Program-made: the position numbers and the translations under genes | The notes under the pieces: model-generated | What the model was told of the DNA's origin: nothing | The model's input: the letters and a program-made list of their open reading frames with translations, nothing else | Database searches by the model: none | Part shown: in pieces, positions 43,816 through 62,414 of the stretch | Numbering within the stretch: the first letter of the stretch is position 1 | How the letters are laid out: the number at the start of each line of letters is the position of its first letter | Assembly (NCBI RefSeq): GCF_000737315.1 | Contig: NZ_JMCB01000003.1 | Span: 496,001-560,000, forward strand | Direction: 5' to 3' | Length of the DNA stretch: 64,000 bases | Source of the DNA: Hyalangium minutum | GTDB taxonomy: Bacteria > Myxococcota > Myxococcia > Myxococcales > Myxococcaceae

Positions 43816-43993
43816 GGCGCGGGACCCTAGAGGAAGCGCTGCTTGAAGGCACCCTGAAACGTTGGATCTCAGGAGGGGACTTCCCTGCTGACGCAGTGCG
43901 AAAAGCGCCAGGCATTCAGTCCTTGCTCGGAGAGCGAGCGGGCGGAGTGCGGGCGCCCTCGCGCTGGGCTGCCGGGCGCTACAGCTTGAGTCC

Positions 43994-45091
43994 ATGCTGC
44001 TGGGACTGACAGGGGATCCAGGGTGGCCCGCGCCCGCCGAAGCGCTGGCGAAAGCGCGTCGCTTCCTGGAGGCACAGAAGGACCGTCATGTCCTCGTGGC
44101 GCCTCATACCGACGTGGATGGGCTCTCCTCGGGAGTCTTGGCGCTGCGGGCACTGCGGACGCTCGGGGCGCGGACCACCTCGCGGCTCCCGGGCAAGGGT
44201 GAGCACGCTCACTCGCCTGCCTTCCAAGAGCGCATGGCCAAAGTGGGCGCCGAGGCGCTCGTGGTGCTCGACATGGGGAGCCGCTCCGCCCCCATCCTTC
44301 CGGGCGTGCCCACGCTCGTCGTGGACCACCACCCGTCCACGGAGTACCCGGAGGGAGCGCTGGTGCTCACCAGCTACGGCCATGAGCCCATCGCCCCCAC
44401 GAGCCTGTTGACCTATTCGCTCGTCTCGCCCCTGGTCATCCCTGGCCCACTGGAGTGGCTGGCTGTGCTCGGCACCGTGGCGGATCTCGGGGTGGATGCT
44501 CCCCTGCCCTCGCTCAAGGACGCGCTGCGACGCGCGGGGCGTAAGGCCGTGACGGAAGCCGTGGCCTTGCTCAATGCCGCGCGACGCTCGTCCCACTTCG
44601 CCGCGTCCCTGGGGCTCGAGGTGCTGATGCGCGCGGGCAGCGCCGCGGACATCAACGAGGGCCGAGTGCCCGGCGTGGACGCGCTTCGTGACTGCCGTCT
44701 GGAGGTCCAGCGCGAGGTGACCCGCTGTGCGAAGACCCCTCCCCGCTTCTCTGGGAACGTGGCGCTGCTGCTGTTCAGCTCCGGCGCCCAGGTCCACCCG
44801 CTGGTGGCGGTGCGCTGGGCCCAGCGGCTGCCCGAGCACATCGTCATCGCCGCCAACGCGGGCTATCTCCCCGGCCGGGTGAACTTCGCCGTGCGCAGCC
44901 GCGAGCCGAGGGATCTCATCGCCTTCTTGCGCGGGCTGGAGCTGCCCTTCGAGGGCGAGTACGCCCGGGGCCATGCCCAGGCCACCGGAGGCAGCCTCTC
45001 CGCCCGGGAGTTCCTCCAGTTCACCGAGGCGCTCGGCTTCCGAGGGCTCCAGGCGAACGACGTGGAGCGCCGGGGCGTCGCGCCAGGCTGA
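43994..45091 (+). CDS. DHH family phosphoesterase (RecJ-like)
   Basis: HTDVDGLSS, LDMG, VDHH, GTVAD, GHAQATG. Confidence 0.88.
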   Translation: MLLGLTGDPGWPAPAEALAKARRFLEAQKDRHVLVAPHTDVDGLSSGVLALRALRTLGARTTSRLPGKGEHAHSPAFQERMAKVGAEALVVLDMGSRSAPILPGVPTLVVDHHPSTEYPEGALVLTSYGHEPIAPTSLLTYSLVSPLVIPGPLEWLAVLGTVADLGVDAPLPSLKDALRRAGRKAVTEAVALLNAARRSSHFAASLGLEVLMRAGSAADINEGRVPGVDALRDCRLEVQREVTRCAKTPPRFSGNVALLLFSSGAQVHPLVAVRWAQRLPEHIVIAANAGYLPGRVNFAVRSREPRDLIAFLRGLELPFEGEYARGHAQATGGSLSAREFLQFTEALGFRGLQANDVERRGVAPG

Positions 45092-45758: not shown

Positions 45759-47606
45759 ATGTCTCAGTCGCTGCGCCGCCTGTCCCGCTGGGGAAGCACC
45801 TTCCTCGCCATGAGCCTCATCCCCGGGTGCGCCACCAAGAGCCCCCAGGAGGCCTCCGCTGTCCAGAAGGAGCGCGCCGACATTGCGCAGCAGGTCGCGC
45901 CCCAGCAGCCCCGCGCGCGGGCTGAGGCTCTGCCTCTCGTCGCGCCGGCCGAAAAGGTGGCCAAGGCGCAGCCCCCTGCGGAGCCCGAGGCCTCCGAGGA
46001 GGATGTCGAAGGCGAAGTGGTCGGAAGTGTCGAGGGAATGGTCATGGGCGGGGTGCTGGGAGCCCAAGTCTCGTCCGAATCCTCTCGGGCGTATGCCCCT
46101 CCGCCTCCGCCTCCGCCTACCAGCATGGCCTACCGGGCCAAGCCGGGGAAGAAGGCGATGATGCAGCCGGGGAGCATGGCGCCGAGCCCCAAGCCCAGCA
46201 CTCCCCCCGTCACCGAGGTCGAGGACGGCGTCACCACCCAGCACGGCAACACCTTCGAGGCCTACGCGGCCAACCCCTTCACCACCACGAAGGAGGACGC
46301 GCTCTCCACCTTCGCGGTGGACGTGGACACCGCCTCGTACTCGCTGGCGCGCCGCTACCTGAAGCAAGGCTCCCTGCCCCCGCCCGAGGCCGTGCGCGTC
46401 GAGGAGTTCGTCAACTACTTCAAGTACCGCTACGCCCCGCCGGAGAAGGGCGCCTTCACGGTGCACATCGAGGGTGCGCCCTCCCCGTTCGGCGAGGGCC
46501 GGCACTTCCTGCGCGTGGGCGTGCAGGGCAAGATCGTCTCGCGCTCGCAGCGCAAGGCGGCGCACCTCGTGTTCCTGGTGGACACCAGCGGCTCCATGCA
46601 GTCCGAGGACAAGCTGCCGCTCGTCAAGGAGGCGATGAAGATCGCCGTCAAGAACCTCAACGAGAACGACACGGTGGCCATCGTCACCTACGCGGGCTCC
46701 ACGCAGGACGTGCTGCCTCCCACGCCCGCCACGGACCAGAAGCGCATCTACGCGGCGATCGACTCGCTCCAGTCCGGCGGTGGCACGGCCATGGGCACGG
46801 GCATGGAGATGGCGTACCGCCACGCCGTGAGGAAGGTGGGCGGCAACGTGGTCTCCCGCGTGATCGTCCTCACGGACGGTGACACCAACATCGGGCCCAA
46901 CCTCTCCGCGGACTCCATGCTGACGAGCATCAAGAACTACGTGGCCGAGGGCGTCACGTTGACGACGGTGGGCTTCGGCATGGGCAACTACCGCGACGAC
47001 ATGATGGAGAAGCTGGCGGACAAGGGGAACGGCAACAGCTTCTACGTGGACAGCTTCGCGGAGGCGAAGAAGGTCTTCGAGACGCAGCTCACGGGCACGA
47101 TCGAGGTGATCGCCAAGGACGTGAAGCTCCAGGTGGAGTTCAACCCGGCCTCCGTGCGCCGCTACCGGCTGGTGGGCTACGAGAACCGCAACGTGGCGGA
47201 TCGGGACTTCCGCAACGACAAGGTGGACGCGGGAGAGATCGGCGCGGGCCACAACGTCACGGCGCTGTACGAGGTGGAGCTGACCGGCGAGCAGGCCCCG
47301 CTGGCCACGGTGCGCATCCGCGCCAAGGCGCCCAACGGCACCGAGGCCGCCGAGCAGGCCTTCCCCTTCGAGCGGAGCATGCTGCGCTCCTCGGTGGAGG
47401 AGGCCTCCTCGGACTTCCGGTTCGCGCTGGCGGTGGCGTCCACGGCGGACATCCTGCGGCACAGCCCGGCTTCGAAGGACTGGAGCCTGGCCACCGCGCG
47501 CAAGCTCGGCGAGGGCGCCTCCGATGGCACCGCCGAGCGCACCGAGTTCCTGAAGCTGGTGACGCAGGCCCAGGCACTCATGGGCGCCTCGGCCGCGCGC
47601 CGTTAG
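45759..47606 (+). CDS. VWA domain lipoprotein (YfbK-like)
   Basis: Lipobox; STFAVDVDTASY, VRVEEFVNYF, DTSGSM, TDGD, YRLVGYENR, DAGEIGAGH. Confidence 0.92.
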   Translation: MSQSLRRLSRWGSTFLAMSLIPGCATKSPQEASAVQKERADIAQQVAPQQPRARAEALPLVAPAEKVAKAQPPAEPEASEEDVEGEVVGSVEGMVMGGVLGAQVSSESSRAYAPPPPPPPTSMAYRAKPGKKAMMQPGSMAPSPKPSTPPVTEVEDGVTTQHGNTFEAYAANPFTTTKEDALSTFAVDVDTASYSLARRYLKQGSLPPPEAVRVEEFVNYFKYRYAPPEKGAFTVHIEGAPSPFGEGRHFLRVGVQGKIVSRSQRKAAHLVFLVDTSGSMQSEDKLPLVKEAMKIAVKNLNENDTVAIVTYAGSTQDVLPPTPATDQKRIYAAIDSLQSGGGTAMGTGMEMAYRHAVRKVGGNVVSRVIVLTDGDTNIGPNLSADSMLTSIKNYVAEGVTLTTVGFGMGNYRDDMMEKLADKGNGNSFYVDSFAEAKKVFETQLTGTIEVIAKDVKLQVEFNPASVRRYRLVGYENRNVADRDFRNDKVDAGEIGAGHNVTALYEVELTGEQAPLATVRIRAKAPNGTEAAEQAFPFERSMLRSSVEEASSDFRFALAVASTADILRHSPASKDWSLATARKLGEGASDGTAERTEFLKLVTQAQALMGASAARR

Positions 47607-49019: not shown

Positions 49020-50033
49020 ATGGCGCCGTCCCCCCGGAAAGCTCCCCCCACTCCCTTTGGGGACTACCTCCTCCTCGATCGCATCAGCATTGGCGGCATG
49101 GCCGAGCTCTGGCGCGCCAAGATGTTCGGGAGCGAGGGCGGCGGGCGGCTCGTGGCGCTCAAGCGGATCCTCCCGTTCCTGTCGATGGACGAAGAGTTCA
49201 TCGCGATGTTCCTGGACGAGGGGCGGCTGGGGCTCCAGCTGCTCCACACCAACATCGCGCAGACCTTCGAGATGGGACAGGTCAACTCCGAGCCCTTCCT
49301 CTCCATGGAGTACGTGGCCGGCAAGTCGCTGGGAGACATCTTCGAGCACCACCGCAAGGGGGGCGAGCCCGCGCCCCTGCCCCTGGTGCTCCACTGCATC
49401 GCGGAGATGTGCGCGGGCCTGGACTACGCGCACCGGAAGAAGGACGGCACGGGGAGAGACTTGAACCTCGTCCACCGAGGCCTCTCCCCCCACGACGTGC
49501 TGCTCTCCTTCAACGGTGAGGTGAAGGTGATCGACTTCGGGATCGCCAAGGCCACGGGCCGGGTGACGCAGACGCAGCCCGGCATCATCAAAGGCAAGTT
49601 CGGCTACATGAGCCTGGAGCAGATCGACGGCCCGGCGGTGGATCGGCGCGCGGACGTATTCGTGATCGGCGTGTGCCTCTACGAGCTGCTCACGGGCGAG
49701 CGGCTCTTCCCGGGGGATAACCCGATCGACATCATCGAGAAGATGCGCCAGATGCAGGTGGCGCCGCCGTCCCAGTTCAACGCCGACGTGCCCCAGGTGC
49801 TGGATCGGATCGTCTTCCGCGCGCTGGCGCCCAACGTGAACGAGCGCTACGCGTACGCGAGCGAGCTGGGCGACGATCTGCGGCGCTTCCTGGCCCAGTA
49901 TGGCGAGCGCTTCACGCAGGAGGATCTGCGGAAGTACCTGCGCACCACCTTCGCGCAGGATGTCCAGAGAGAGGAGCAGCGGCTGCGGGAGTACGCGCAG
50001 ATGACGCCGCCCAAGGACTTCGACTTCTCCTGA
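49020..50033 (+). CDS. Pkn-type Ser/Thr kinase domain with degenerate catalytic loop (probable pseudokinase)
   Basis: IGGMAEL, VALKRI, DFGIAK and GKFGYMS are present, but HRD...N reads HRGLSPHD. Confidence 0.88.
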   Translation: MAPSPRKAPPTPFGDYLLLDRISIGGMAELWRAKMFGSEGGGRLVALKRILPFLSMDEEFIAMFLDEGRLGLQLLHTNIAQTFEMGQVNSEPFLSMEYVAGKSLGDIFEHHRKGGEPAPLPLVLHCIAEMCAGLDYAHRKKDGTGRDLNLVHRGLSPHDVLLSFNGEVKVIDFGIAKATGRVTQTQPGIIKGKFGYMSLEQIDGPAVDRRADVFVIGVCLYELLTGERLFPGDNPIDIIEKMRQMQVAPPSQFNADVPQVLDRIVFRALAPNVNERYAYASELGDDLRRFLAQYGERFTQEDLRKYLRTTFAQDVQREEQRLREYAQMTPPKDFDFS

Positions 50034-50451: not shown

Positions 50452-50964
50452 TCAGCGAGGCTCTGGCTCAACCGGCTCCTTGAGCCTCTGAAGAGGGACT
50501 GCGTCCCGGCTCTTGGGGACAACGTGGGCACTGACCAACCACTTCCCAGAAGGATCCCCTCCTACAATAAGCAGGATGGGTTCAGGGCAGCGATAATCCG
50601 CAGTGCTTGCGATGATCTCGAGTTGCTGAAGATCTGTATCGCTCGGCACCGGCGCAGCGTAGGGGTGGAAGTGCCACTCACCCAGATAATGGGCACCACG
50701 TGAGGCCCAGCGGCGATCGAGCCATCTCTGGAGACCTCTCGTGCCACGCTGGAACCAGCTTGGCCCGCGAACCGAATCTACGGGGGAGCCAGACGCAGCA
50801 CTCACCCGAGCACAATCGAGCGCGGCGGAGTACACCCCCACGAGGATGCCTCCCGTCTCTTTCCTCCACGAAGAGCGGCACAGGTGGAGAAGCCGCCGGA
50901 CGGTGGCCCCTGGGATATGCACACCGAAGCGGGCATCCGCAGAGCGAAATTCAAGATCGGGCAT
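50452..50964 (-). CDS. cap3: CBASS Cap3-type JAB/Mov34 peptidase
   Basis: ETGGIL, YLGEWHFHP, PSDTD; follows the E2-E1 gene. Confidence 0.9.
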   Translation of the reverse strand: MPDLEFRSADARFGVHIPGATVRRLLHLCRSSWRKETGGILVGVYSAALDCARVSAASGSPVDSVRGPSWFQRGTRGLQRWLDRRWASRGAHYLGEWHFHPYAAPVPSDTDLQQLEIIASTADYRCPEPILLIVGGDPSGKWLVSAHVVPKSRDAVPLQRLKEPVEPEPR

Positions 50965-52783
50965 GGGCTTCCACAGGGGACACATGGTTCACTCCGCGGA
51001 AGAAGTCGTTGTGTTCATCACGCTCATAGACATCAAGACGCGCGGCAGGGCGCGCCGTTGCCGCCTGCACCAGCGACTTCACTGCGATAGCAGCGGCCAA
51101 CGCCACGTCATCCGCCCGAGCAGGAAAGACGGGATGCCAGCAACCGAGTCCCTCCCTGGGAAGATTGGTGCGCTTGAGCTCGTCGTGCTCCAGGCGGATC
51201 CACGACCCGGCCTGCTTCCAGAACTCCTCGAACGGAAAAGAGGTGCCCGTAGCGCTGAAGCACAAGAGACGCCGGGCCCTCACACCAAAGGAAGTGGAGA
51301 AGAACAGGCGGGACGCTTCCCAGGCAAACCGGTGCAGCGTCTCAAGGACCTCGTCCGAGGCGGTACAGTCCAGGATCGTGTCGCAACGAGATACGAGCCA
51401 AGTGCTTCGAGCCATTTGATCGTCTAACTGTTTCCGAAAGGCATGGACCTGCAGGTCCGGATTGAGGGTGCGCAGATGATGCGCGAGCGCCTCGGCCTTG
51501 GAATACCGGACATCCGTTACGTCGAGTGTGTGGCGGACGAGATTCCCGGCTTCGAGAGTTTCTCCATCCAGAATGACTAGGCGGGAGACGCCGCCACGGA
51601 CGAGCAATTCCGCCATGGCGGAGCCCAGAGCCCCTGCGCCAAGCAACAACACCCATGAGCTTCGCAGCGGCTCCGGCAGCGCTCCACGGCTCCGCAAATC
51701 TTCGGGCGCCCAGTTTTCAGTGCGGAGCCAGTGAATCGGACGTGCTTTCTCGAACAGATTGACCTGATCGTAGAGCCAATACCCCTGCTCGTTACGGCGG
51801 TAGCCGCGCGGAGCCAGGTCGCCATGGGCGAAGATTGGCAGCCGAAGCGCCCACCAATGCATGCGCACGTTCGGCCCATCGATCTTCTCCGGAATCGGAA
51901 AGCCGATGAGGCACAGGTGGCGCTCGCCATCCCGGAGCTTCGAGGAAAAACCCTGAAGCTCCTTTCGGAGCTCCAGTCCCCGGGACCGAAGCGCCTCCTC
52001 CAGCTCGGGCCAGCACGTGGGAGGGGCATAGGGGGACAAAACTGGGAGCGAGTCACACCGCATCCACGGTACACGGAAGCGTCGTCGTCGAGACCTTGAG
52101 CGGAACAGGTCTCCCCAGTCGAGCGAGACCAGCCGCCGGCCGTCGAGCGAGGAGAACGCATCGACAACACACAGCCGCGGGTTTCCAGGAACCGTGACCA
52201 AGTCCGCCCATCCCCGCGACTCTTGGCACTTCATCCAAGTGCCAAGTTCCCCAGGTCTCTCCCTGAAGACCACTTGCAAGGTTCCGTCCGTGGGCAGGTC
52301 GGGCAGTTCAAAGGCGTGACCTGGGGCGAGTAGACGGCCTTGGGCCGCAGCTTCAAGCCAGTCCCGTGCGCCCTTCACGTGCCACGCGAGCCGTGCCTCA
52401 GGGCTCCGGGGTTCCTCCTCTCTTGCCCGCAGTCCAAGCGCTGCAAGCCCTGTCTGCAGACACAGCCGCCCTTCCCGCCACGGCCGAGCTGCTGGCCCTG
52501 GATTGTTCAGGCGTTGGTGCGGATGCGTGCCCTCGATTCCACCCTTCTTGGAGGGGAAGAAGTCGATTCGTCCCCAGGGATAGTGCGCGTCGATGAGCGC
52601 ATACCAGTCCGTCCATGCGGGGATGGAGCTCCCCGTGGTGTCCGCACGAAGGCGCAACGGGAGGACCCAACACTGCTCCTCTGAGTCCCAGTCCACGTCT
52701 CCGAGCAGTTCCACTCCGGCTATTCCATCCAGGACACGACGGCCCAGGCGGAGTGAGTCCGTCAGCGAGGGCGCGTCTGTCAC
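50951..52783 (-). CDS. cap2: CBASS Cap2-type E2-E1(ThiF) fusion
   Basis: N-terminal E2-like region (YPWGRIDFFP, HQ, GRLCL); ThiF LLGAGALGS, DGETLEAGNLVRH, DCTA; C-terminal GCWHPVFPA. Confidence 0.92.
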   Translation of the reverse strand: MTDAPSLTDSLRLGRRVLDGIAGVELLGDVDWDSEEQCWVLPLRLRADTTGSSIPAWTDWYALIDAHYPWGRIDFFPSKKGGIEGTHPHQRLNNPGPAARPWREGRLCLQTGLAALGLRAREEEPRSPEARLAWHVKGARDWLEAAAQGRLLAPGHAFELPDLPTDGTLQVVFRERPGELGTWMKCQESRGWADLVTVPGNPRLCVVDAFSSLDGRRLVSLDWGDLFRSRSRRRRFRVPWMRCDSLPVLSPYAPPTCWPELEEALRSRGLELRKELQGFSSKLRDGERHLCLIGFPIPEKIDGPNVRMHWWALRLPIFAHGDLAPRGYRRNEQGYWLYDQVNLFEKARPIHWLRTENWAPEDLRSRGALPEPLRSSWVLLLGAGALGSAMAELLVRGGVSRLVILDGETLEAGNLVRHTLDVTDVRYSKAEALAHHLRTLNPDLQVHAFRKQLDDQMARSTWLVSRCDTILDCTASDEVLETLHRFAWEASRLFFSTSFGVRARRLLCFSATGTSFPFEEFWKQAGSWIRLEHDELKRTNLPREGLGCWHPVFPARADDVALAAAIAVKSLVQAATARPAARLDVYERDEHNDFFRGVNHVSPVEAHARS

Positions 52784-53874
52784 GCGAACCTACCGCTGCC
52801 CACCATTCCCGGCCCTCCCTGGTGCGGTGTGAAGTTTCCTTGTGGGGGTGAGCCGCGCCCGGGCTCCGGGGCTCGTGGGAACTTGTCGCCAAAGAGCTCT
52901 CGCCATAGCGGCGCCGCCGTCTGCGCATCGGGTGCCTCGAAGGCTTGGCGTGCCTTTTTCGCGGCAGCGGCCACCTGCGCATGGAACTTCGCGAAGTCGT
53001 CACCGCTGATACGTGCCATGACGTTCTGATCCACACCCCGGTCTGGTGCGTAGGGAGCGTGCGTATTGGCGGCATGCAATGCGTAGCTCTGAGTGAACCG
53101 CTCCAAAGTCCGGACCACACCCTCGGCCACGGACGAGATTCCGTCCGGGCAGCAATCGCCGATGAGGTGCTCCAGTGGATAGCTCTTGGGCCGGTCAGGC
53201 AGTGCGCCCGCGTGAACAAGCCGCCACCACTTGAGGGCCTTCACGACGTTGACGAAGTGCCCCGAGCACCGGGCGTTCTTTTGGCTCGTCCAGCTCAGCT
53301 GTACCAGCGGGTGGGTGTCCTGCCACGCGCCCAAATCCCGGTCCGGAATCCGTAGCGGCTCCGACTTCCACTGAGGGTTGCCGTTCGAGTCTGTCTTGAC
53401 GATCGGCTGCGACTCGTCCTCTTCGATCTGGAGGACGTCCTCGCTCTTGGCGAACGCGCTGTAGACACCAGCCTCGGCTTCCACCGGCGCGGCAGTAATG
53501 ACGAGGTCCATCTCCACGGTGGACATCACGATGCCGAAAGAGCGGCCCTGCTGCCGGTACTTGTCGTGGTAGTACTTCTCGAGAAAGGGCCTGAAGCAAG
53601 CCATGGCCTCAGCGGGCGTGAACTCGGACTCCTTCATGCGGGTCACAACGATGAGGTCGACATCCGCCTTCTTGCCGTCCTTGGGCCGGACCGCTGTGCG
53701 GCGCTTGTAGCTGCCCTGGAGGAACATGCTCACGAAGCCTGTCTTGAGCTGCGCGTCCGACTGCAGGCGCTCCTTCAGCCTGGAGTACCCATCAATCATC
53801 TCGGCACGCTGGGCTTTGGTCGGACGGATGTCTTGGAGGAAATCAGCGAAGTAGGTGGGAAGGGGAAGTGTCAT
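52780..53874 (-). CDS. cGAS/DncV-like nucleotidyltransferase (CD-NTase 1, Cap2-associated, 364 aa)
   Basis: FLQGSYKRRTAVRP...ADVDL, MDLV, VKALKWW, PKSYPLE; C-terminus ...GSGRFA. Confidence 0.93.
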   Translation of the reverse strand: MTLPLPTYFADFLQDIRPTKAQRAEMIDGYSRLKERLQSDAQLKTGFVSMFLQGSYKRRTAVRPKDGKKADVDLIVVTRMKESEFTPAEAMACFRPFLEKYYHDKYRQQGRSFGIVMSTVEMDLVITAAPVEAEAGVYSAFAKSEDVLQIEEDESQPIVKTDSNGNPQWKSEPLRIPDRDLGAWQDTHPLVQLSWTSQKNARCSGHFVNVVKALKWWRLVHAGALPDRPKSYPLEHLIGDCCPDGISSVAEGVVRTLERFTQSYALHAANTHAPYAPDRGVDQNVMARISGDDFAKFHAQVAAAAKKARQAFEAPDAQTAAPLWRELFGDKFPRAPEPGRGSPPQGNFTPHQGGPGMVGSGRFA

Positions 53875-53935
53875 GGCACATGGATCACGAATGGCGCGGC
53901 ACTTGTTACATGCGCCGCCATGGCTTTCCTGAGGC

Positions 53936-55387
53936 TCAGCGCGAAAGCCGGTCCACGAGCCGCACCGCCGGGTCTCCCAGCAGGGTGTAGCTTGTGAGGT
54001 CGTGCCGCTCCATCCACAGGTGGGCTCGCTCCGTGGTCCGCTCTTTGGCCTGCTCCTCGTCAATCTCTCCGGACAGCGACTGACCCGAGGAGCCAGCTGC
54101 GGCGGTCTCTTGGTGATACTTCCGAAGTTCCCTGTCTGCCTTCGAGGCAAAGCGCGACAGGGAATGAAGCGCGAGCCCCACCCGGGAGCCCTCCACCATG
54201 GTCGTCAGCACATCCTCCAGCCGGTGGGTATGCGTCTCCCCGTTCCGGGGATTATGGAAAGCGCAGATCCATGCCATGTCCAGGTGGCCGATAACAGCGA
54301 GGGGCCCTTTGGGATTGGCCAGCGCTGCTTGGGGCAATGCTGCGATAAAGGGCCGCGCATCTAGGGGGCGGGACCGATCGACACGCTCCAGTACCCATTG
54401 CGACATCACGCTCGTTTGGACGAGTTGCTCCATCCAGGGCCGGAACACGCTCCGCGTCGGCGTGCCCGCGCCGAAGCAAGCAAAGTAGAACCAGATGCCT
54501 CCCGGCAGGAACTCCTTCTGACGGACCTCGTCGGCAGTCAATGCGGTTCCCTGGCCGAACCACATGTTGCCCTGCTCCCGCCTCTGCGCTTCCGGGCTCA
54601 CCCAACCCGAGGTTGGCGCCCCAACGCCATGACTCAAAGTGAAGAGCAGGCCAGGCTCCGGAGCACGGACCAGTTCCAGCAGCTTTTCTTTGGCGCCCGC
54701 GGGCAACTGCTCCACCGTCAGGGAACTCGCCGGAAAGTATCCCTTGTCGCGAGCCTCCGAGCACCGCTGTGCCGCCGGAGCGACGACGAACCTGTGGCCG
54801 CTCAGCACCGGGGGCGACATGTCCTGCGCCGTCAAAAATACAGCCCGGGCCTGCTGAGGACGTGCCGCATCCCGCTCACGGGTCAGCACCTTCTCAACAT
54901 AAGCTGCGTAGTCGTCCTCTCGCTCGAAGGGCAGGCGCCCCACGAGGGTGACGCCTTCGCCCGTCAGTTCCTCCTGCAGTTCCATCGAGAGATCTTCTGG
55001 TGTCCCAGCGAGCAGCACGTAGCTGGCGTGCTCTCGCGAAGACCGGGACGTCGGGTACATCGTGTCGGCCAGGAACTTACGTGCCTCTTTCTCATTCATC
55101 CCCGGAGGGGCACGGTAAATGTCCACGCTCCGGCGCTGCTCTTCCGCACGACGCTTGCAAAGCGGCGAGAGGATGGCTTCGAGGCGCCGGCCTCTCTCGT
55201 TGTCAGGAACTACGAGCGCCCATCTCTGCTCCTCGAGCGAGTTCGGATCGGCGGACAGGTTGTACAGGTGGGTGGGCTTGGGCAGGGGCACTGGAAGCGG
55301 TGCCTCCCACAGGGACTCCAGCGGAAGAGGCATCTCGATGACGGGGCGCCCGTCTCCTGCCTGTGCGAGCAATAGCTGCAGTGTCAC
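53936..55387 (-). CDS. Gingipain(C25)-like clan CD cysteine protease
   Basis: YVLLAG, VGRLPF, TLSHG (His), YFACFGAG (Cys), AVIGH, LLGDP. No obvious signal peptide. Confidence 0.75.
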   Translation of the reverse strand: MTLQLLLAQAGDGRPVIEMPLPLESLWEAPLPVPLPKPTHLYNLSADPNSLEEQRWALVVPDNERGRRLEAILSPLCKRRAEEQRRSVDIYRAPPGMNEKEARKFLADTMYPTSRSSREHASYVLLAGTPEDLSMELQEELTGEGVTLVGRLPFEREDDYAAYVEKVLTRERDAARPQQARAVFLTAQDMSPPVLSGHRFVVAPAAQRCSEARDKGYFPASSLTVEQLPAGAKEKLLELVRAPEPGLLFTLSHGVGAPTSGWVSPEAQRREQGNMWFGQGTALTADEVRQKEFLPGGIWFYFACFGAGTPTRSVFRPWMEQLVQTSVMSQWVLERVDRSRPLDARPFIAALPQAALANPKGPLAVIGHLDMAWICAFHNPRNGETHTHRLEDVLTTMVEGSRVGLALHSLSRFASKADRELRKYHQETAAAGSSGQSLSGEIDEEQAKERTTERAHLWMERHDLTSYTLLGDPAVRLVDRLSR

Positions 55388-55740
55388 TTCTTCCCTCCCT
55401 TGCCGTCTCCCTTGCTGTCTCCCTTGCCTTCCTTGATCCCAGGACGGCTGGTGCTGCCCGCTTTGTCTCCTCCCGTGTTGGTATCGGTCGGAGGCATGCC
55501 GTAAGTCACCCGCGCTCCCTCGGCCTTGACCTGCGCCACAAAGCGGTCGAGATCCGCGAGCGACCCCTGGACTACAAAGATGACCTGCGGCTGGTCATCC
55601 ATCACCCCATAGGCAGTGAAGCTTCCCTCCTCGCGCGACTGGACGATGTAAACGTGACGCCCTTCCTCTGGATACCCCTCGAAGAACGGCTTGCTATCCC
55701 ACTTCGAAAAATCCAGCGGCTCCACCGACTCACCCGTCAT
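55384..55740 (-). CDS. Small hypothetical protein (118 aa) with Gly/Lys/Asp-rich tail
   Basis: GGAGG RBS before ATG 55740; stop overlaps the next GTG. Confidence 0.75.
   Translation of the reverse strand: MTGESVEPLDFSKWDSKPFFEGYPEEGRHVYIVQSREEGSFTAYGVMDDQPQVIFVVQGSLADLDRFVAQVKAEGARVTYGMPPTDTNTGGDKAGSTSRPGIKEGKGDSKGDGKGGKK
55396..55431. repeat. Three 12-bp near-tandem repeats encoding the (D/E)-x-K-G tail
   Basis: TCCCTTGCCGTC, TCCCTTGCTGTC, TCCCTTGCCTTC. Confidence 0.8.
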
Positions 55741-55787
55741 GACGCCTCCCTGTTGCATGATGACTGCCGCGATGCGGCAGCAAGCTC

Positions 55788-58757
55788 TCACTCGAACACC
55801 AAGACGCCATTGATCCAGTCGGAGTCTTTACCCCCGCGCAGCCACTCGAGGCGTTCGTCGCGAGTAGCAATGCTAGGAGACGCACCTGCCCGGATGCGCT
55901 CGCGCACACTGCCGAAGAAGTCGGATGCGTCCTCGTTGGGGATGGGCTGGGTCGCAGCCAGCACCGTGCGTGCCCCCGCAGTGAGAAAGGCGTTGGGTAG
56001 GCTGCCATGCTCATGAAGGGCGGAGGTTCCGCGCGCGGCCTCGCAGGCCGCCAGGACGACCAGAGGCGCACTTGGGAGCTTCAGCTTGCGAATGCGGTCC
56101 TCGTAAAGCTCATCACTGCCATCCGACCCTGGGGCCAACAGCAAGTAGGCTGTGTTCGAGCCCGGATCGATCTGACCGTGCGTCGCCAGGTCGATTTCCG
56201 TCGCCTCTTGCAAGGCCGCCAGCACGCGGTTCGGGGTGGCATCCAAGTCCCGCAGGGTCCGAAGTGACGCGCCCGGCGCCACATGGGGCGACCACGTCAG
56301 TGAGAGTTGACTGCGTTGCTCGTCGTACCGGACCTCGCTCACCACGACGTGCACGCTGAGCCCTTGCGGAGGTTGGGGCGAAGTGGACCGCGTCCGGTAC
56401 CGCCAGGCGAACTCTGGAGGAAGGAGTCCAGCGCGTCCCTGCAAAGGAGGCCGGGCCAGGACATCCACCGAGGCACAGGGTCTGAGGGCCTCCACCATGT
56501 CCTGGGGTACGACTCCCGCCAAGCTCGTGGGTTCGAACCTCTCACCGCGCACGGGGGCGTATTTGCTCATCCACTGCCCCTCCGAGCCCCGCGCCACCAA
56601 CAGGCTTCGCTCGGTATCCTCAGTGAGCGCGAGGACGCACCGCGCCGGTACAGCGAGGCCCAACTCCGAGCCGAAGAGCCCCAGCGCCGCCGCGAAGTCG
56701 CTCTTCGCGGCGGCGGCGAAGATGAGGGACGTGTAGCTGTAGGCACGGGCATGCCTTGCCGTGACATCATCCGGCGACGCGGAATCCGCCTCGTGGATGG
56801 CCTCTTCCAGCAGCGCACGTCCCTTAATGGCATCCACCTCCACCAGGAAACGCCCCTGAAGGAACTTCGCGTAGGCCTGCTGCCCCAGGGTGTTCCCTGG
56901 CTCCAGCGCCAGCGCCTGCTCCACGGCCGCAGCGTCTCGGGGAGAGCGACGCGTCCGGGCCACGTCCACCAGAGCTTCAATGCCATGCCACGTGAGTGGC
57001 AATCCAACAGCCATGGCTTGATCCAGTTCGGCCCGCGCGTCATCCAACTCCAACGCCTGAATGGCCAGATGGGCGAGGTTCTGATGGATGTTGCGCGCGC
57101 TCTTCGAGTCGCCCTCGGACATCAAGAGAGCCTCGCCGAAGTAAGCACGGCCCAGTGTCACGTCCGCCGCCAGACGCGCGGCGTTGCCCAGCGTCTGCAG
57201 CAGCACTCGCTCCCGATCCCACTGGGCCAGCCGGGCCAATGCCAATCCAGCGCGGGCGTGCCGCTCGGCATCGCTGACCTGAAAGAGCCAGCCAAACACG
57301 TGGGACAAATCGTTCTCAACATCAATGCACCGATAGACCAGTTGCTCTCTCTTGCAGAGGTCGAGCGCCTCCTCGAGGAGTTTCTGCGCCCGGGTGTAGC
57401 GCTCCTGTTCTTGTTCCCGCGATGCCTCCACCTGGAGTCCCAGAACCCGGAACCAAGGGTCCGGGTGAGCACGGGTCCGCTCCACGAGCTTGCTGGCGTA
57501 TTGAGGACGGTGCTGGATGAGGTACGTGAGCGCGCCTAGAGCGAGATCGTCCTCACGCGACGCGAGAAACTTCTGGAGCAGCGCCTCCTCGTCGCGCGCT
57601 TCCACCTGCCCATTCATCAACTGGGCATATTGGGCCGCCAGCGGGGCGCGGACCGAGAAGTCCCGTGCGGCGATGCGCTGCACGTACTCCGCGAGCACCG
57701 TGCCGCCTCCCACGCTCTCATCCAGTTTCCTGGCCAAGGGAAGGAACTCGCGAACTTCCGCAGCGGACGTCCGGGCACGCACAGCGTGATAGAAGTCACG
57801 GCGCATCAACGGAACGTCTGCATAGAGAAGCGCCTGCGACAGTGCGGGAACGCCTCGGGCAATGAGCTCGCCTCCGGCTGCATCTGCTTTCTGCCAACGC
57901 TCCTTTCTCTGCAAGGCGCCGGAAAGCCGCTCCCTCTTTGCCCGGGCCTCGTTCCGCCAGCGCTCATCAGGCTCGGTACGCTCCAGCGACTCCAAGTCCG
58001 CCATGGCTGACAGGGGCAGCCCCAGGTCCCGGAACACCAGGGCACGGTTCCAACGCGCCTGGACGTGACCCGGCTCCCTGCGAAGCACCTCATTGAAAAG
58101 ATGGAGCGCTTCCCGGAACTCCGCCATCGCGCTGGAAACCTCCTGGGACCGGGCGGCCACATAGTGCGCAACCCCCAGGTCACAGAGCACGTTCGCGTCC
58201 CATTTGCGCTCGCTCCGCATCCGCTTCAGGAGCACCTTGGCACGCGCGGTATCGGGTGCGCCGCCCGCCAAGTAGGCCGCAGCCAACTGAGGCAGATCCC
58301 CCCGTTCCTCCAACTGCCCCATGACAGCGTGAGAGAACCCATTCACATTCGAAGTGGGTGCGGAGCCCATGGGAATCTGGGCCAACGATCGGTAGGTGTC
58401 CGCCTCTGGATACGTGACGCGTGCTTCCAGCGTCCGCTGCTGCCGCGCCCACAGCGCGGGCTCCACTCGCGATACGGACTTGCCCGTGAGGCCCAAAGCG
58501 AGCAGCAGCACGGCGGCAACGGATACCACCGCCGCACTGGCCGCCAACCACCGGTTCCGCGGAACGGCGTGCCAAGGCACCTCTACCGGGCCATGCCGCT
58601 CCAGGTAGCGCTTGCCGAGTTGTTCAAGCTGCAGCAGCCGAGTCAGCTCTGCCTGGCACCGCTCACACCCTGCCAGGTGCTTGCCGAAGGCCTGGGCGTC
58701 TGCTGGCGAGAGTTCTCCATCCGCGAAGGACTGGAGTGGGTCGCAGGGAGAGGACAT
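55788..58757 (-). CDS. Zinc-finger anti-sigma (zf-HC2), hydrophobic segment, TPR and CHAT protease fusion (989 aa)
   Basis: HLAGCERC (Hx3Cx2C); LAASAAVVSVAAVLLLALGL; TPR-like ARWNRALVFRDLGL; CHAT LATHG and VLAACE. Confidence 0.88.
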   Translation of the reverse strand: MSSPCDPLQSFADGELSPADAQAFGKHLAGCERCQAELTRLLQLEQLGKRYLERHGPVEVPWHAVPRNRWLAASAAVVSVAAVLLLALGLTGKSVSRVEPALWARQQRTLEARVTYPEADTYRSLAQIPMGSAPTSNVNGFSHAVMGQLEERGDLPQLAAAYLAGGAPDTARAKVLLKRMRSERKWDANVLCDLGVAHYVAARSQEVSSAMAEFREALHLFNEVLRREPGHVQARWNRALVFRDLGLPLSAMADLESLERTEPDERWRNEARAKRERLSGALQRKERWQKADAAGGELIARGVPALSQALLYADVPLMRRDFYHAVRARTSAAEVREFLPLARKLDESVGGGTVLAEYVQRIAARDFSVRAPLAAQYAQLMNGQVEARDEEALLQKFLASREDDLALGALTYLIQHRPQYASKLVERTRAHPDPWFRVLGLQVEASREQEQERYTRAQKLLEEALDLCKREQLVYRCIDVENDLSHVFGWLFQVSDAERHARAGLALARLAQWDRERVLLQTLGNAARLAADVTLGRAYFGEALLMSEGDSKSARNIHQNLAHLAIQALELDDARAELDQAMAVGLPLTWHGIEALVDVARTRRSPRDAAAVEQALALEPGNTLGQQAYAKFLQGRFLVEVDAIKGRALLEEAIHEADSASPDDVTARHARAYSYTSLIFAAAAKSDFAAALGLFGSELGLAVPARCVLALTEDTERSLLVARGSEGQWMSKYAPVRGERFEPTSLAGVVPQDMVEALRPCASVDVLARPPLQGRAGLLPPEFAWRYRTRSTSPQPPQGLSVHVVVSEVRYDEQRSQLSLTWSPHVAPGASLRTLRDLDATPNRVLAALQEATEIDLATHGQIDPGSNTAYLLLAPGSDGSDELYEDRIRKLKLPSAPLVVLAACEAARGTSALHEHGSLPNAFLTAGARTVLAATQPIPNEDASDFFGSVRERIRAGASPSIATRDERLEWLRGGKDSDWINGVLVFE

Positions 58758-59299
58758 CAGTGAGTTCCCTCATCGAGGTAAGGCTTGAGCAACTCGCCGA
58801 GCCTCTGGCGAGCATCGAACAACCGCTTGGCCACGAGTCCAGCAGACACGCCCAGCTTGCTGGCGATCTCCTGGTTGCGCAGTCCCTGGGAGCGGAGCAG
58901 AAAGGTGAGCCGCTGCTGCCGGGGCAGCTTCTCGATGGCCCACTCGAAGCGCTCCCGGGTGATGCGCTCGTACGTGTCCGAGGCCGCTCCCTGTCCCAGC
59001 GTCCAGCGGGTGATGGTCGGATCGTCTTCTGCCTTCTTCCGGCCCATGGTGCCTCGGATCAGGTCATAGAAGTGATTGGTCATGACGGTAATGAGCCAGC
59101 CATCCACTGGCTCTTCGTCCGCCTGGAGCGCTCCAGTGAAGCGCTCGACGAAGCGCAGCAGCGCCTCCTGGACCAGGTCTCTGGGTTCTATGCCCCCGAA
59201 GGCGCGACACAGTTTCTCGGCAATGGGCATCAGCAGCGCGTAATGCTTGGCGTGCCACTCATCGAAATTGCTGGCCACAATCTCCCCGGCGCTCTTCAT
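58757..59299 (-). CDS. ECF (sigma-70 group 4) sigma factor
   Basis: DLVQEALLR, WLITVMTNHFYDLIR, region 4 GLRNQEIASKLGVSAGLVAKRLFDARQRL. Stop overlaps the anti-sigma start. Confidence 0.93.
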   Translation of the reverse strand: MKSAGEIVASNFDEWHAKHYALLMPIAEKLCRAFGGIEPRDLVQEALLRFVERFTGALQADEEPVDGWLITVMTNHFYDLIRGTMGRKKAEDDPTITRWTLGQGAASDTYERITRERFEWAIEKLPRQQRLTFLLRSQGLRNQEIASKLGVSAGLVAKRLFDARQRLGELLKPYLDEGTH

Positions 59300-59381
59300 G
59301 ACCGTGTCTCCGGTCCGTCCCCAATAAGGACACGGAGGGCACATGAATTATTACGTCCCGACATGCGGGCAGCAGGGAGGA

Positions 59382-61331
59382 TCATGAGCGGCGCCCGGCT
59401 TTGCGCGTGACGCATCCAGACCAGGGGACCTCCACATAGCCCTCGGACCTCCGGAAGTTGAAGAGCTTGAAGGTGGGATGCGTTTTCGGGTTGTAGACCC
59501 TGCCCAGTGCTGCTGCCAGACTGGCCGGACACGCCAGCGCGAGCCACACCTCTTGAACGTCTGGCCATTCAGCGCGGATGCGCTCCAGACATGTGCGGAA
59601 CTCCTCGACGGCATGTGCCGTGTCCAGAGGTCCTCGCAGCACCGTAGGTGAGGGCCCACGGGCTGCCACCAGGCGCACCAGCGCGGGAGGTGCCTCGGTC
59701 CCCAGCCACCGGGCCAGTTCCTCGGAGTGGATGGACAGGTTCACCTCAAGGGTCATGGCCAGGCGTCCCCCCGATGCGCGTCCGGCCTCGGGAGCCGGCC
59801 AAGCCTCCTCCCGGAAGAACTTCTCCTCAGAAGAAGGCTGCTGCATGGAGTCGTAGCCACAGGTCCAAACGCCGGTGCGTCCTCTTTGCTCCTGGTACAC
59901 GCTCAGCTTCCACCGGCTCAACCGCCACCCCAGATGGAACATGAGCGGCAAGGGGGCACGCCCGAAGAGGTGCACCTTTGAAACGTGTGTTCCAAGCGCG
60001 TCTACGAGCTGATCGGCCTGATCGAGTGCGCGCCGCCACTCCCGGGAGGTGGCGGGCAAATCATCCCTGACCTTGTCAAAGGGCTGCAGCACGACGACAT
60101 CCGGATCCTCACCGGCCTCTCCTTTGAGCGCCTCGATGATGGAGGCATGCGCCACGTTGAAGTTCACCTCGTAGGCCACCACGAGTTCCTCCGGAAGCTC
60201 GGGGAGCGGCGTGTCTGGCGAGAACACTATGCGTTGCCCGCGCGCACGGGCCTCGGGCGGAGACTGCGCAAAGAACTGGAGCGATGCCCAGTCGAGGGAC
60301 GACGCACTCAGTACCTCATGGGCTTTCTGAAAGGCTTCGTAGATGGGGACATTCTGTCCGCAGAGAGCTTGGTAGAACGCCCCCGTCATCTGTACAGAGC
60401 CGTTGATGCTCAGGGGCATCTGCGATGCGATGACCGCTGGGATGCCGAGGCGGTGAAGGTCGTGGGCCACCCCTCCAAACATGCTCCCCACCTGACCAGG
60501 ATTACCGCCGTGACATGCGCTCAGCACGATTGCCTGTAGATCCCGGTGATAGGGACCCAGCACATCGCGAAGGCTGTCTCCATCAATCCGCGTGGGTCTG
60601 CTCGGCCGATGGGGATCTTTCCAGCTCAGTCCAAACGTTCCTCCGGGAACTGGGCCTCCGTGACACAGGATGTGGAGGATGCGAAACGGCTTCCCCTCTT
60701 GGCGTGCCTTTTTCAACCTGCTGCGAAGCGAATCCAGGGTCACATCCTTGAGTGCGTCCTGATCCTGATTGAAGTCGGGACACGCCTTCTGGATGGCGGA
60801 GAGATGGCGGTCCTCCTCGACATCCCCCTCCGCGTCGGACCAGGCGAACAGAACCCGGCCATGGCGGTGGGAGGCCGGGGGAGTCAACGTGTTGTGGGCC
60901 CATTCGAACTGCAGGGGATGCGGCGCGATCGTGCCAAGGCTTCGGCCTCCATGGCTGAGCGAAGTCAGTGACCAGGGGAGGCTGAACAGTTCCCCTGCGC
61001 TGAAGCGAAATAGCAGCCGACGAGGTGTGTGCGTTTCCTCGGCCTCAAGTAGAGCGTTCTCGTAGGCCTCCCAGCCCTCCAGTTCTTTCAGCACGTCCTC
61101 GAGAAATCTGCGCAGCAGATCACCCATCTGCCTTCGTACGGAGGAGGAGGGATCCGGGCGCAAGAACTCCGAACGAAGCGTCTCCACCTTGTCCCATGCG
61201 AGAAGGGCCGCCCCCAGCTTCCCCTTCGCACCTCGCGCGAAGTACTGCTGGGGCCTTCCATCAAACGCATAGGGCTCGTTCGGCCTCTCCGAGCGGCCCA
61301 ACTCGATTGTCAGCGTGCGCAGTCCAGGCAT
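59382..61331 (-). CDS. CHAT protease-SAVED sensor fusion (649 aa)
   Basis: CHAT: ELFSLPW, LHILCHG, VLSACHGG, AVIASQMP. SAVED: VHLFGRAPLPLMFHLG, VYQ, VWLALACPASLAAALG, GYV. Confidence 0.9.
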   Translation of the reverse strand: MPGLRTLTIELGRSERPNEPYAFDGRPQQYFARGAKGKLGAALLAWDKVETLRSEFLRPDPSSSVRRQMGDLLRRFLEDVLKELEGWEAYENALLEAEETHTPRRLLFRFSAGELFSLPWSLTSLSHGGRSLGTIAPHPLQFEWAHNTLTPPASHRHGRVLFAWSDAEGDVEEDRHLSAIQKACPDFNQDQDALKDVTLDSLRSRLKKARQEGKPFRILHILCHGGPVPGGTFGLSWKDPHRPSRPTRIDGDSLRDVLGPYHRDLQAIVLSACHGGNPGQVGSMFGGVAHDLHRLGIPAVIASQMPLSINGSVQMTGAFYQALCGQNVPIYEAFQKAHEVLSASSLDWASLQFFAQSPPEARARGQRIVFSPDTPLPELPEELVVAYEVNFNVAHASIIEALKGEAGEDPDVVVLQPFDKVRDDLPATSREWRRALDQADQLVDALGTHVSKVHLFGRAPLPLMFHLGWRLSRWKLSVYQEQRGRTGVWTCGYDSMQQPSSEEKFFREEAWPAPEAGRASGGRLAMTLEVNLSIHSEELARWLGTEAPPALVRLVAARGPSPTVLRGPLDTAHAVEEFRTCLERIRAEWPDVQEVWLALACPASLAAALGRVYNPKTHPTFKLFNFRRSEGYVEVPWSGCVTRKAGRRS

Positions 61332-61336
61332 GGTTC

Positions 61337-62218
61337 CTACCGGACTGGGTAGTCCGTCCCCAACAACTCCCGCCAGAGTTCGTTCGCGCCAGGCATGTCG
61401 ACCCGCCGCTCAAGTTCCAGCGCTCGGGCCGCCTTGCGTGAGGCGCCCGAAAGCCGCTGCTGCCCTTGCTGAAGATGCCCCTCCCCTACTCCGGCATTCA
61501 CAGGAGGCCCGAGCCCAGCGGGATCCTTCCAGTCAGCCCGGATGTGCTCGCTCATGAACTGAAACAGATGCGCCATGCCCTGCGCGTAGACGGACGGGTG
61601 GGACTCCGGCTGGAACGAGGCAATGCCCTCGTAGGCCATCACCTCCAGCAAGAACGACGGCACCGGCTTGCCTTGGAGTTGGTTCCAGCGCTTGATGGCC
61701 TTGATGAGCGGCTTCAGCCGCTGCATCGCTTTCCTGTTCGCCTCGTCACAGGCCGCGATGTGCTTGCGCGGATTGCTCCGGATCCACTGCCCCAAGCGCA
61801 TATCGGGAATCCAGTAGATGCCCGGCTGGCGCAGATCTTCGAACGCGGGGACCACATCGAAACCGATGCCCGTCCCGGAGAACTCAATGTTGACCGAGCG
61901 GTTTTGCAGTCGCGGTTGCTTGCCGCGGAACTCCTTCCGCAGCGCTTGCGCGACGCGCTCGAGAAACTCTTGTGGCTGCAGGACCTTTCCGTTTCCGCTC
62001 GAGTCCGTCGTGAAGATGAGGAAGAGGTCGATATCGTGCAAAGGCCGGATGGCCGTATTCCGTCCATACGAGCCACTGAGAATGGACTCCCGCGGGCTCA
62101 GATGGTGACGCAACGCATCGAAGACGACCCGCTCCTGACGCTGCGCCTCGCGGTTCTCACCTTCGCGGAGCTCTAGGTCCTGCATGAACTGCTCGAATGA
62201 CTGCGCCACAGTCGGCAT
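61337..62218 (-). CDS. Second CD-NTase/SMODS nucleotidyltransferase (293 aa)
   Basis: LSGSYGRNTAIRPLHDIDL, FDVVPA, NPRKH, LIKAIKRWN, SFLLEVMA. Confidence 0.92.
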   Translation of the reverse strand: MPTVAQSFEQFMQDLELREGENREAQRQERVVFDALRHHLSPRESILSGSYGRNTAIRPLHDIDLFLIFTTDSSGNGKVLQPQEFLERVAQALRKEFRGKQPRLQNRSVNIEFSGTGIGFDVVPAFEDLRQPGIYWIPDMRLGQWIRSNPRKHIAACDEANRKAMQRLKPLIKAIKRWNQLQGKPVPSFLLEVMAYEGIASFQPESHPSVYAQGMAHLFQFMSEHIRADWKDPAGLGPPVNAGVGEGHLQQGQQRLSGASRKAARALELERRVDMPGANELWRELLGTDYPVR

Positions 62219-62414
62219 CGTTGGTGTCTCCTCTCTTGCTAAGAGACACGAAGGAGACCGCAGGCATTACATCTGCTGAGCACAGCAAGCCGACAATTCC
62301 TGGACTACATTGCCCCACCTCCTTCGCGCAGGGCGTCCAGCGCGAGGAGCAGGAGAGAGCAAATTTCCCGCTCTCCCCCTCCCCTTCAGCTCAAGGCCGC
62401 GCGAGCGTCTCCGC

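Follow-up and report, generated by a model that had tools for sequence, protein, structure and literature searches.

Two myxobacterial systems are among the closest described relatives of the locus analyzed here. The SAVED-CHAT protein of Haliangium ochraceum (Protein Data Bank (PDB) entry 8TL0) joins a SAVED sensor to a CHAT protease whose catalytic residues are H375 and C422, i.e., its CHAT domain is C-terminal, and upon cA3 binding it cleaves and activates the protease PCaspase (Steens et al., bioRxiv 10.1101/2023.06.23.546230). The other is the DdvS/DdvA-regulated island of Myxococcus xanthus, which combines CBASS, an antiphage signaling system based on cyclic oligonucleotides, with genes of the clustered regularly interspaced short palindromic repeats (CRISPR) type (Bernal-Bernal et al. 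2018, PMC6061681; 2024, PMC11506125). For MXAN_7290 of that island, the prediction of an effector with "N-terminal CHAT, C-terminal SAVED" has already been published (PMC11506125). The M. xanthus island continues with a type II CBASS, followed by Cmr genes of type III-B and a CRISPR array, and the induced island as a whole protects against phage Mx4, without attribution to individual genes (PMC11506125). Here we analyzed a 64,000-nucleotide stretch of Hyalangium minutum (contig NZ_JMCB01000003.1, positions 496,001 to 560,000; hereafter the window), which carries a nine-gene locus of the same arrangement on its minus strand. Its second gene encodes a 649-aa protein that we call CHAT-SAVED. We consider it probable that CHAT-SAVED is the cyclic-oligonucleotide receptor and protease effector of this CBASS island and that it activates a co-encoded gingipain-like protease.

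The locus spans positions 50452-62270 including its first promoter motif (P1), and the genes are ordered CD-NTase A, CHAT-SAVED, extracytoplasmic function (ECF) sigma factor, anti-sigma factor, a 118-aa protein, a 483-aa C25-like protease, CD-NTase B, Cap2, and Cap3 (Table 1). When the genes of the M. xanthus island were searched against the window with tblastn, all nine, the counterparts of MXAN_7291 to MXAN_7284, were found in collinear order at 54-75% identity. The two islands share the CHAT-N/SAVED-C protein, its neighbors and their order, and the promoter motif GTAA-N16-CGT at three positions (P1-P3). They come from different genera and differ after Cap3, where the M. xanthus island carries the type III-B Cmr genes, a fourth promoter, and the CRISPR array, while in the 64-kb window we found no Cmr1, Cas10, Cmr3, or Cmr4 by tblastn, no CRISPR array, and no fourth DdvS-type motif after Cap3. 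Judged from sequence comparison, CHAT-SAVED is the MXAN_7290 ortholog in a Ddv-type island that has no CRISPR arm in this window. It is not a new kind of system, given that the architecture and the locus are published and that a full-length PADLOC model exists; for genome annotation, the result is an ordinary one, a Ddv-type CBASS island without the CRISPR arm. An earlier note on this DNA, written from the letters without database searches, had singled out the CHAT-SAVED gene. The architecture and context that it gave are correct, but it overlooked the published M. xanthus island, the ECF sigma regulon, and the adjoining gingipain-like protease. Because the locus is the ortholog of a published island in which the same architecture had been recorded, its novelty is lower than that note implied.

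In the 649-aa protein, Pfam detects CHAT (residues 101-350, E = 2.6e-16) and SAVED (PF18145; residues 439-633, E = 5.1e-26), and the NCBIfam SAVED model (NF033611) spans residues 398-635 (E = 2.8e-24). The PADLOC CBASS effector model SAVED_CHAT (PDLC02016), which is 498 positions long, is covered from position 5 to 492 by residues 5-634 in a single collinear alignment (E = 4.9e-83), and this profile match makes CHAT-SAVED a member of that PADLOC effector family. An AlphaFold2 (AF2) model built on an alignment reached a predicted local distance difference test (pLDDT) score of 85 and a predicted template-modeling (pTM) score of 0.58, the latter of which suggests a flexible hinge near residues 356-381. 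In Foldseek searches, the C-terminal ~270-290 residues superpose on the SAVED domains of Cap5, 3TM-SAVED, SAVED-CHAT 8TL0, Cap14, and Cap4 (E = 3e-13 to 1e-9; template-modeling (TM) score relative to the target up to 0.75), and the N-terminal half matches the TPR-CHAT protein Csx29.

The catalytic dyad lies in the motifs LC-H224-G and SA-C273 (codons 60660-60662 and 60513-60515), and its His-Cys distance of 49 residues is typical for clan CD proteases. Both residues are invariant across an alignment of 22 full-length CHAT-SAVED homologs; of 142 sequences that contain the same CHAT module, 140 retain H224 and all retain C273. The gene starts 5 nt after the TAG stop codon of CD-NTase A (61337-61339; spacer GAACC), and an AGGA overlaps this stop codon just before the CHAT-SAVED ATG. 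In a public protein collection the same gene appears as a 581-aa product starting at the internal Met69. Since the homologs, the conservation of residues 1-68, and the AF2 structure all favor 649 aa, the deposited start was probably mis-called and too short, and the longer form is preferable. The best protein matches to CHAT-SAVED are from Hyalangium, Archangium, and Cystobacter. From its sensor, its intact effector dyad, and its operon with a CD-NTase, we regard CHAT-SAVED as a CBASS SAVED-domain effector, whose activation by a ligand is predicted by analogy. The earlier note had read the protease as N-terminal and the sensor as C-terminal, the dyad (CHG/SAC) as intact, and the distance from the CD-NTase as 5 nt. 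Pfam, NCBIfam, PADLOC, and AF2/Foldseek agree on the first of these, the alignment bears out the second, and the third is exact. Its "SAVED motifs" was loose wording for a domain that is indeed present by Pfam and by fold, because SAVED is defined by profile and fold, not by a motif.

Against the Haliangium protein, phmmer aligned residues 428-637 of CHAT-SAVED to residues 53-279 of 8TL0 (E = 1.3e-5), and only the SAVED halves could be aligned. With SAVED at 53-279 ahead of the H375/C422 dyad in 8TL0, and with the dyad at 224/273 ahead of SAVED in CHAT-SAVED, the domain order is opposite to that of the characterized SAVED-CHAT, as had also been noted before. A profile search of 1.84 billion representatives found ~9 clusters that match CHAT-SAVED over its full length, and hundreds of 1000-2000-aa proteins that match residues ~1-360 only, always with their own N-terminus. 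The nearest relatives of the CHAT module are annotated as nSTAND1/AAA_16 NTPases with WD40; the other long matches are known by length only. The CHAT module of CHAT-SAVED appears to be the N-terminal effector head of STAND NTPases, with SAVED occupying the usual place of the NTPase sensor. The reversed order would then reflect this apparent ancestry, since the family of the CHAT module normally sits N-terminal to STAND NTPases. A restriction of the CHAT-N/SAVED-C architecture to the ~9 clusters was considered and rejected when we found a second, more divergent CHAT-SAVED subfamily. Its genes lie beside paralogous sigma/anti-sigma/gingipain-like cassettes, directly after the gingipain-like gene in the loci L053 (11448-13421), L058 (10853-12916), L081 (11443-13446), and L083 (10713-12902) and before it in L026 (4004-6178), and Pfam SAVED was confirmed in all five scanned proteins of the subfamily. 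In L081, an HNH-SAVED (Cap5-like) gene is located ~2.4 kb beyond the divergent CHAT-SAVED gene.

Like the Haliangium protein, CHAT-SAVED is a fusion of CHAT with a homologous SAVED domain (Foldseek E = 2e-12, in addition to the phmmer match), it comes from a myxobacterial host, and its locus contains a sigma factor and a second clan-CD protease. However, the CHAT domains are not alignable by sequence, the partner protease is a C14 PCaspase in Haliangium and a gingipain-like enzyme (C25-like, H253/C304) in Hyalangium, and the signal comes from Cas10 in the former and from CD-NTases in the latter, whose window contains neither Cmr, Cas10, nor a CRISPR array. In addition to these differences, the Hyalangium locus encodes an anti-sigma factor that is a membrane protein, and it lacks the PCk kinase and the PCi of Haliangium. 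Because domain order, CHAT ancestry, partner type, and CRISPR linkage (in the window) all differ, CHAT-SAVED is placed outside the Haliangium SAVED-CHAT family, although it is predicted to work like that protein and like a CBASS SAVED effector. With Cap4 and Cap5 it shares the SAVED fold (TM score up to 0.73-0.75), the operon linkage to a CD-NTase, and an expected ligand-driven oligomerization, as well as the C-terminal position of SAVED in the case of Cap5; the effector of Cap4 and Cap5 is a nuclease, whereas that of CHAT-SAVED is a cysteine protease.

The co-encoded 483-aa protein was modeled by AF2 with a pLDDT of 89.8, and the best Foldseek matches of the model are the gingipains Kgp and RgpB (E = 5e-10) over ~460 columns, leaving no extra domain; the dyad His253/Cys304 is conserved. 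This protein was also considered as a second nucleotide receptor for CD-NTase B, and the candidate was rejected on the grounds that a sequence search gave no PDB match and that the AF2 model has the gingipain fold throughout. A gingipain-like gene accompanies the orthologous CHAT-SAVED in 16 of the 17 loci examined. We also sampled 78 loci independently with a gingipain-like profile: 28 have a full CHAT module of the same subfamily within 6.3 kb, often adjacent, and 12 more have a divergent CHAT. The SAVED profile of the orthologous family is matched in eight of these 28; the remaining 20 belong either to CHAT-STAND proteins or to the divergent CHAT-SAVED subfamily. Of the nearest CHAT-STAND relatives, three were checked, and the genes of two of them directly follow a gingipain-like gene within a DdvS-like/DdvA-like cassette. 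The loci L089 (1905-10517) and L090 (1985-10736) consist of a DdvS-like sigma factor, a DdvA-like TPR-CHAT anti-sigma factor, a ~230-aa protein, and a gingipain-like protease, with a CHAT-nSTAND1 NTPase in place of CHAT-SAVED and no cyclases. The CHAT-nSTAND1 (WD40/TPR) NTPases of Myxococcota thus share with CHAT-SAVED the N-terminal ~360-residue CHAT module, the same dyad, and the position beside gingipain-like genes and DdvS/DdvA-like pairs, but they contain a C-terminal STAND NTPase with repeats instead of SAVED, so that no cyclic nucleotide would be required to activate them. Since the CHAT family recurs beside the gingipain-like protease, and by analogy to how SAVED-CHAT switches on PCaspase, a two-protease cascade is suggested. 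We put forward as a tentative possibility the broader view that CHAT-SAVED is the initiator of a conserved cascade in Myxococcota, in which an initiator CHAT with an interchangeable sensor (SAVED or STAND) acts on a gingipain-like executioner behind a transcriptional gate formed by a periplasm-sensing TPR-CHAT anti-sigma factor. In the literature that we searched, there was no description of a cascade from an initiator CHAT to a gingipain-like protease, and nothing under the name "CHAT-SAVED".

As for the signal, the nearest solved relatives of CD-NTase A are 6P8U, 6P82, and 6P8J (E = 4.7e-33, ~33% identity), which we take to be the HORMA-regulated CdnD of P. aeruginosa that makes cAAA. The nearest solved relative of CD-NTase B is the cyclic AMP-AMP-GMP synthase CdnD of E. 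cloacae (E = 2.4e-88, full length, ~50% identity), whose product activates the SAVED nuclease Cap4. Because both cyclases are nearest to clade-D trinucleotide synthases and the solved SAVED-CHAT is specific for cA3, the ligand of CHAT-SAVED is most probably, by analogy, a cyclic trinucleotide such as cAAA or cAAG.

The earlier note had also proposed CHAT-SAVED as the signal receiver for one or both cyclases, and this reading from gene content is well supported but indirect. By Pfam, PADLOC, NCBIfam, and Foldseek, CHAT-SAVED is the only recognizable cyclic-oligonucleotide sensor in the nine-gene locus, and the CD-NTase B/Cap2/Cap3 module has no effector gene of its own there. In eight other loci, the CD-NTase and CHAT-SAVED genes overlap or are at most 7 nt apart. 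Across the compared islands, the six-gene core from CD-NTase A to the gingipain-like gene is constant, whereas the effector-less cyclase module downstream of it varies: it is type II in the Hyalangium window, M. xanthus, and L086, and type III (TRIP13-Cap8-HORMA-CD-NTase) in Stigmatella and A. violaceum; the type III loci are L001, L002, and L087. The loci L085 (9187-21045) and L087 (7253-20193) contain three CD-NTase genes and still one SAVED protein; in L087, a WYL-domain gene lies between the cyclase modules. A Cas10-containing Cmr operon is attached to the orthologous CHAT-SAVED loci in M. xanthus and L084. The strongest argument for multiple inputs is that cyclase modules are swapped or multiplied around one constant CHAT-SAVED.

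Transcription appears to be a further gate. DdvS-dependent promoters in M. xanthus are defined by GTAA-N16-CGT, and DdvS activity induces MXAN_7291 572-fold and MXAN_7290 285-fold (PMC6061681). The 64-kb window contains four matches to this motif, compared with 1.08 expected, and three of the four lie where predicted, on the minus strand. In all 11 orthologous islands from other genomes, the sole same-strand matches within 14-22 kb are at the P1-P3 positions, apart from a fourth match after Cap3 in some of them. P1 probably drives a bicistron of CD-NTase A and CHAT-SAVED. From the conserved motifs together with the M. xanthus data, we infer that CHAT-SAVED is transcribed with CD-NTase A only after DdvS has been freed from DdvA. 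For M. xanthus, this release has been proposed to involve a periplasmic trigger, possible CHAT autoproteolysis, and cleavage by RseP (PMC11506125). The −10 element of P3 ends 12 nt before the ATG of CD-NTase B (53874-53909, minus strand); its transcript therefore would have a very short leader or none, as for another DdvS promoter in M. xanthus.

Taken together, the receptor-protease reading would proceed as follows. As in M. xanthus, the gene would be nearly silent until the membrane anti-sigma factor DdvA is inactivated and DdvS is released. A cyclic oligonucleotide would then be supplied by CD-NTase A, by the Cap2/Cap3-regulated CD-NTase B, or by both. Following the solved SAVED effectors and SAVED-CHAT, this ligand would glue SAVED domains head to tail, and the oligomer would switch on the CHAT sites. 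The gene neighborhoods point to the co-encoded gingipain-like protease as the preferred substrate, and its cleavage may turn it into a broad executioner, leading to growth arrest or death of the infected cell.

Several points weigh against this reading. What is known of how the CHAT-SAVED family works comes from sequence and predicted structure, and its filament geometry may differ from that of the solved SAVED-CHAT, as the two CHAT domains are not close relatives. The ligand identity rests on the nearest solved cyclases, which are ~33% and ~50% identical, and among the Foldseek neighbors of the SAVED domain are binders of dinucleotides as well as of trinucleotides. In 38 of the 78 gingipain-like loci there is no CHAT nearby, many of them being short contigs, and the enrichment of CHAT beside gingipain-like genes was judged from proximity, not by a formal test against the genome-wide CHAT background. 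Finally, in L084 (3548-12281, a metagenomic contig) a CD-NTase and CHAT-SAVED lie directly upstream of a complete type III-B operon (Cmr1-6), and no sigma, anti-sigma, small-protein, or gingipain-like gene is within reach. By its gene content, L084 is a minimal CBASS/CRISPR hybrid of the CHAT-SAVED family, and since it lacks a gingipain-like gene, the cascade partner is not obligatory.

Other readings of the same locus have to be weighed against the receptor-protease reading. CHAT-SAVED might answer to CD-NTase A only, with the CD-NTase B/Cap2/Cap3 module signaling to an unrecognized receptor elsewhere or being an effector-less remnant. CD-NTase A is the only cyclase translationally coupled to CHAT-SAVED, and the two cyclases are only ~23% identical and may make different products. 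We nevertheless find this doubtful: the locus has no other recognizable sensor, the second module is conserved with its own DdvS promoter and is replaced by an equally effector-less type III module in sister islands, and the nearest solved relative of CD-NTase B signals to a SAVED effector, Cap4. A different role is that of a feed-forward regulator, in which activated CHAT-SAVED would cleave cytoplasmic DdvA (or DdvA-DdvS), free DdvS, and amplify transcription of the island. The sigma/anti-sigma pair adjoins CHAT-SAVED in 16 of the 17 loci and also accompanies the second CHAT-SAVED subfamily in a different gene order, and all island promoters carry the DdvS motif. There are precedents in CalpL-CalpT-CalpS and in Craspase (Csx29-Csx30-CASP-sigma), where the genes for a signal-gated protease, an ECF-type sigma factor, and the inhibitor of that factor likewise stand together and the protease cleaves anti-sigma-like proteins. 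The proteases of these systems, however, are Lon-SAVED or RNA-guided TPR-CHAT and cut soluble anti-sigma-like proteins, whereas the Hyalangium anti-sigma factor sits in the membrane, carries a periplasmic TPR-CHAT itself, and acts upstream as the transcriptional gate of the island. Moreover, the release of DdvA in M. xanthus has been put down to a trigger in the periplasm and subsequent intramembrane proteolysis by RseP (PMC11506125), and CHAT-SAVED is DdvS-dependent, so that the cell would contain hardly any of it until DdvS is freed. CHAT-STAND proteins, which do without a cyclic nucleotide, are found with the same sigma/anti-sigma cassette as well, and L084 has no such pair. We regard the feed-forward role as unlikely on balance, although it could run alongside the cascade.

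CHAT-SAVED could also be an executioner by itself, degrading many cellular or phage proteins, with the gingipain-like protease belonging to the DdvS/DdvA unit. The L084 arrangement of CD-NTase, CHAT-SAVED, and Cmr operon without a gingipain-like gene would fit such a role, as would P1 and P2, which put the effector and the ddvS-ddvA-small-gingipain-like genes into separate transcription units. On the other hand, the solved SAVED-CHAT is highly specific and its toxicity requires the second protease, and the CHAT and gingipain-like families co-occur with three different sensor arrangements, which makes solitary action improbable in our view.

If the broader view of an initiator CHAT with an interchangeable sensor is true, one SAVED receptor would integrate two to three differently regulated cyclases, plus Cas10 where Cmr is attached, and a STAND NTPase would serve as the sensor in sister cassettes, a bacterial analog of apoptosome or inflammasome logic with modular inputs. 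Only one CHAT-type SAVED protease has been studied so far, one in which the domain order is opposite and the CHAT domain unrelated. The CHAT-SAVED family is a natural second case for the switching of a protease by ligand-glued SAVED oligomers, here with protease and sensor in exchanged places. Another point of interest is whether a single receptor can pool the signals of a type I-like cyclase, of a cyclase regulated by Cap2/Cap3 or HORMA/TRIP13, and, in some genomes, of Cas10. The recurrent pairing of the gingipain-like protease with SAVED as well as STAND sensors points toward a general death cascade of two proteases in myxobacteria.

Table 1 Features of the Hyalangium minutum CBASS island, in the direction of transcription, with identities to the M. 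xanthus island (tblastn)
Feature	Position	Strand	Basis	Identity to M. xanthus
P1, DdvS-type ECF motif, 30 nt upstream of CD-NTase A start	62248..62270	minus	GTAA-N16-CGT	
CD-NTase A, 293 aa	61337..62218	minus	Pfam SMODS E 2.8e-24; PADLOC cyclase E 4.8e-85	56%
CHAT-SAVED effector, 649 aa, MXAN_7290 ortholog (by sequence)	59382..61331	minus	ATG start; Pfam, PADLOC, NCBIfam, AF2, Foldseek	57% (full length)
N-terminal CHAT protease module, residues 1-360: beta/alpha extension and caspase-like core	60252..61331	minus	Pfam CHAT 101-350, conserved dyad	
C-terminal SAVED sensor domain, residues ~365-640	59412..60239	minus	Pfam, NCBIfam, Foldseek	
P2, DdvS-type motif, between CHAT-SAVED stop and ddvS start	59332..59354	minus	GTAA-N16-CGT	
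ECF sigma factor, DdvS ortholog, 180 aa from ATG 59299	58757..59299	minus	Pfam Sigma70_r2/r4_2; NCBIfam sigma70-ECF	75%
Anti-sigma factor, DdvA ortholog, 989 aa	55788..58757	minus	Pfam zf-HC2, TPR, CHAT	64%
Small conserved protein, 118 aa	55384..55740	minus	conserved in all islands	57%
Gingipain-like (C25-like, clan CD) cysteine protease, 483 aa, MXAN_7287 ortholog	53936..55387	minus	weak Pfam Peptidase_C25; AF2/Foldseek	54%
P3, DdvS-type motif, upstream of CD-NTase B	53887..53909	minus	GTAA-N16-CGT	
CD-NTase B, 364 aa from ATG 53874, type II CBASS cyclase	52780..53874	minus	PADLOC cyclase E 1e-138	75%
Cap2 (E1/E2-like), regulator of CD-NTase B	50951..52783	minus	Pfam ThiF; PADLOC E1-E2 E 2.9e-203	63%
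Cap3 (JAB isopeptidase)	50452..50985	minus	Pfam Prok-JAB E 5.7e-10; NCBIfam Cap3	66%

The DdvA ortholog contains an N-terminal zf-HC2, one transmembrane helix (~residues 70-92), TPR, and a CHAT domain with His860/Cys905. The 118-aa gene that follows shares 4 nt with the start of the gingipain-like gene, to which it is translationally coupled. Its product combines a core and a PPF-DTNTGGDK-S-TTKPG tail, both conserved, with an end rich in Lys and Gly whose coding sequence is a 12-nt tandem repeat (55395-55428). In L007 and L021, this protein is duplicated in tandem within one open reading frame. No match to it was found in Pfam, PADLOC, NCBIfam, or PDB, the best E-value of the PDB profile search being 0.43. 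We considered it as an inhibitor like PCi, to which a CI-2 fold is attributed, and found no support (hhalign probability 0.03, nothing in the PDB below the E-value just given); a role of the 118-aa protein as an inhibitor or substrate is speculation. Similarly, a Ser/Thr kinase gene convergent with Cap3 was considered as an analog of PCk and rejected, as it is not conserved beside the sister islands beyond the kinase-rich myxobacterial background.

Elsewhere in the window, this kinase gene occupies ~49050-50033 on the plus strand; the open reading frame listed for it (767 aa) is over-extended, and only its last ~330 residues look real. It is preceded on the same strand by a gene for a vWA/YfbK_C-domain protein (45759-47606), for which, as far as checked, no relation to the island was seen. 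A 669-aa open reading frame on the minus strand (41986-43995) matches Peptidase_M2, the angiotensin-converting enzyme family, along its entire length (E = 5e-234).

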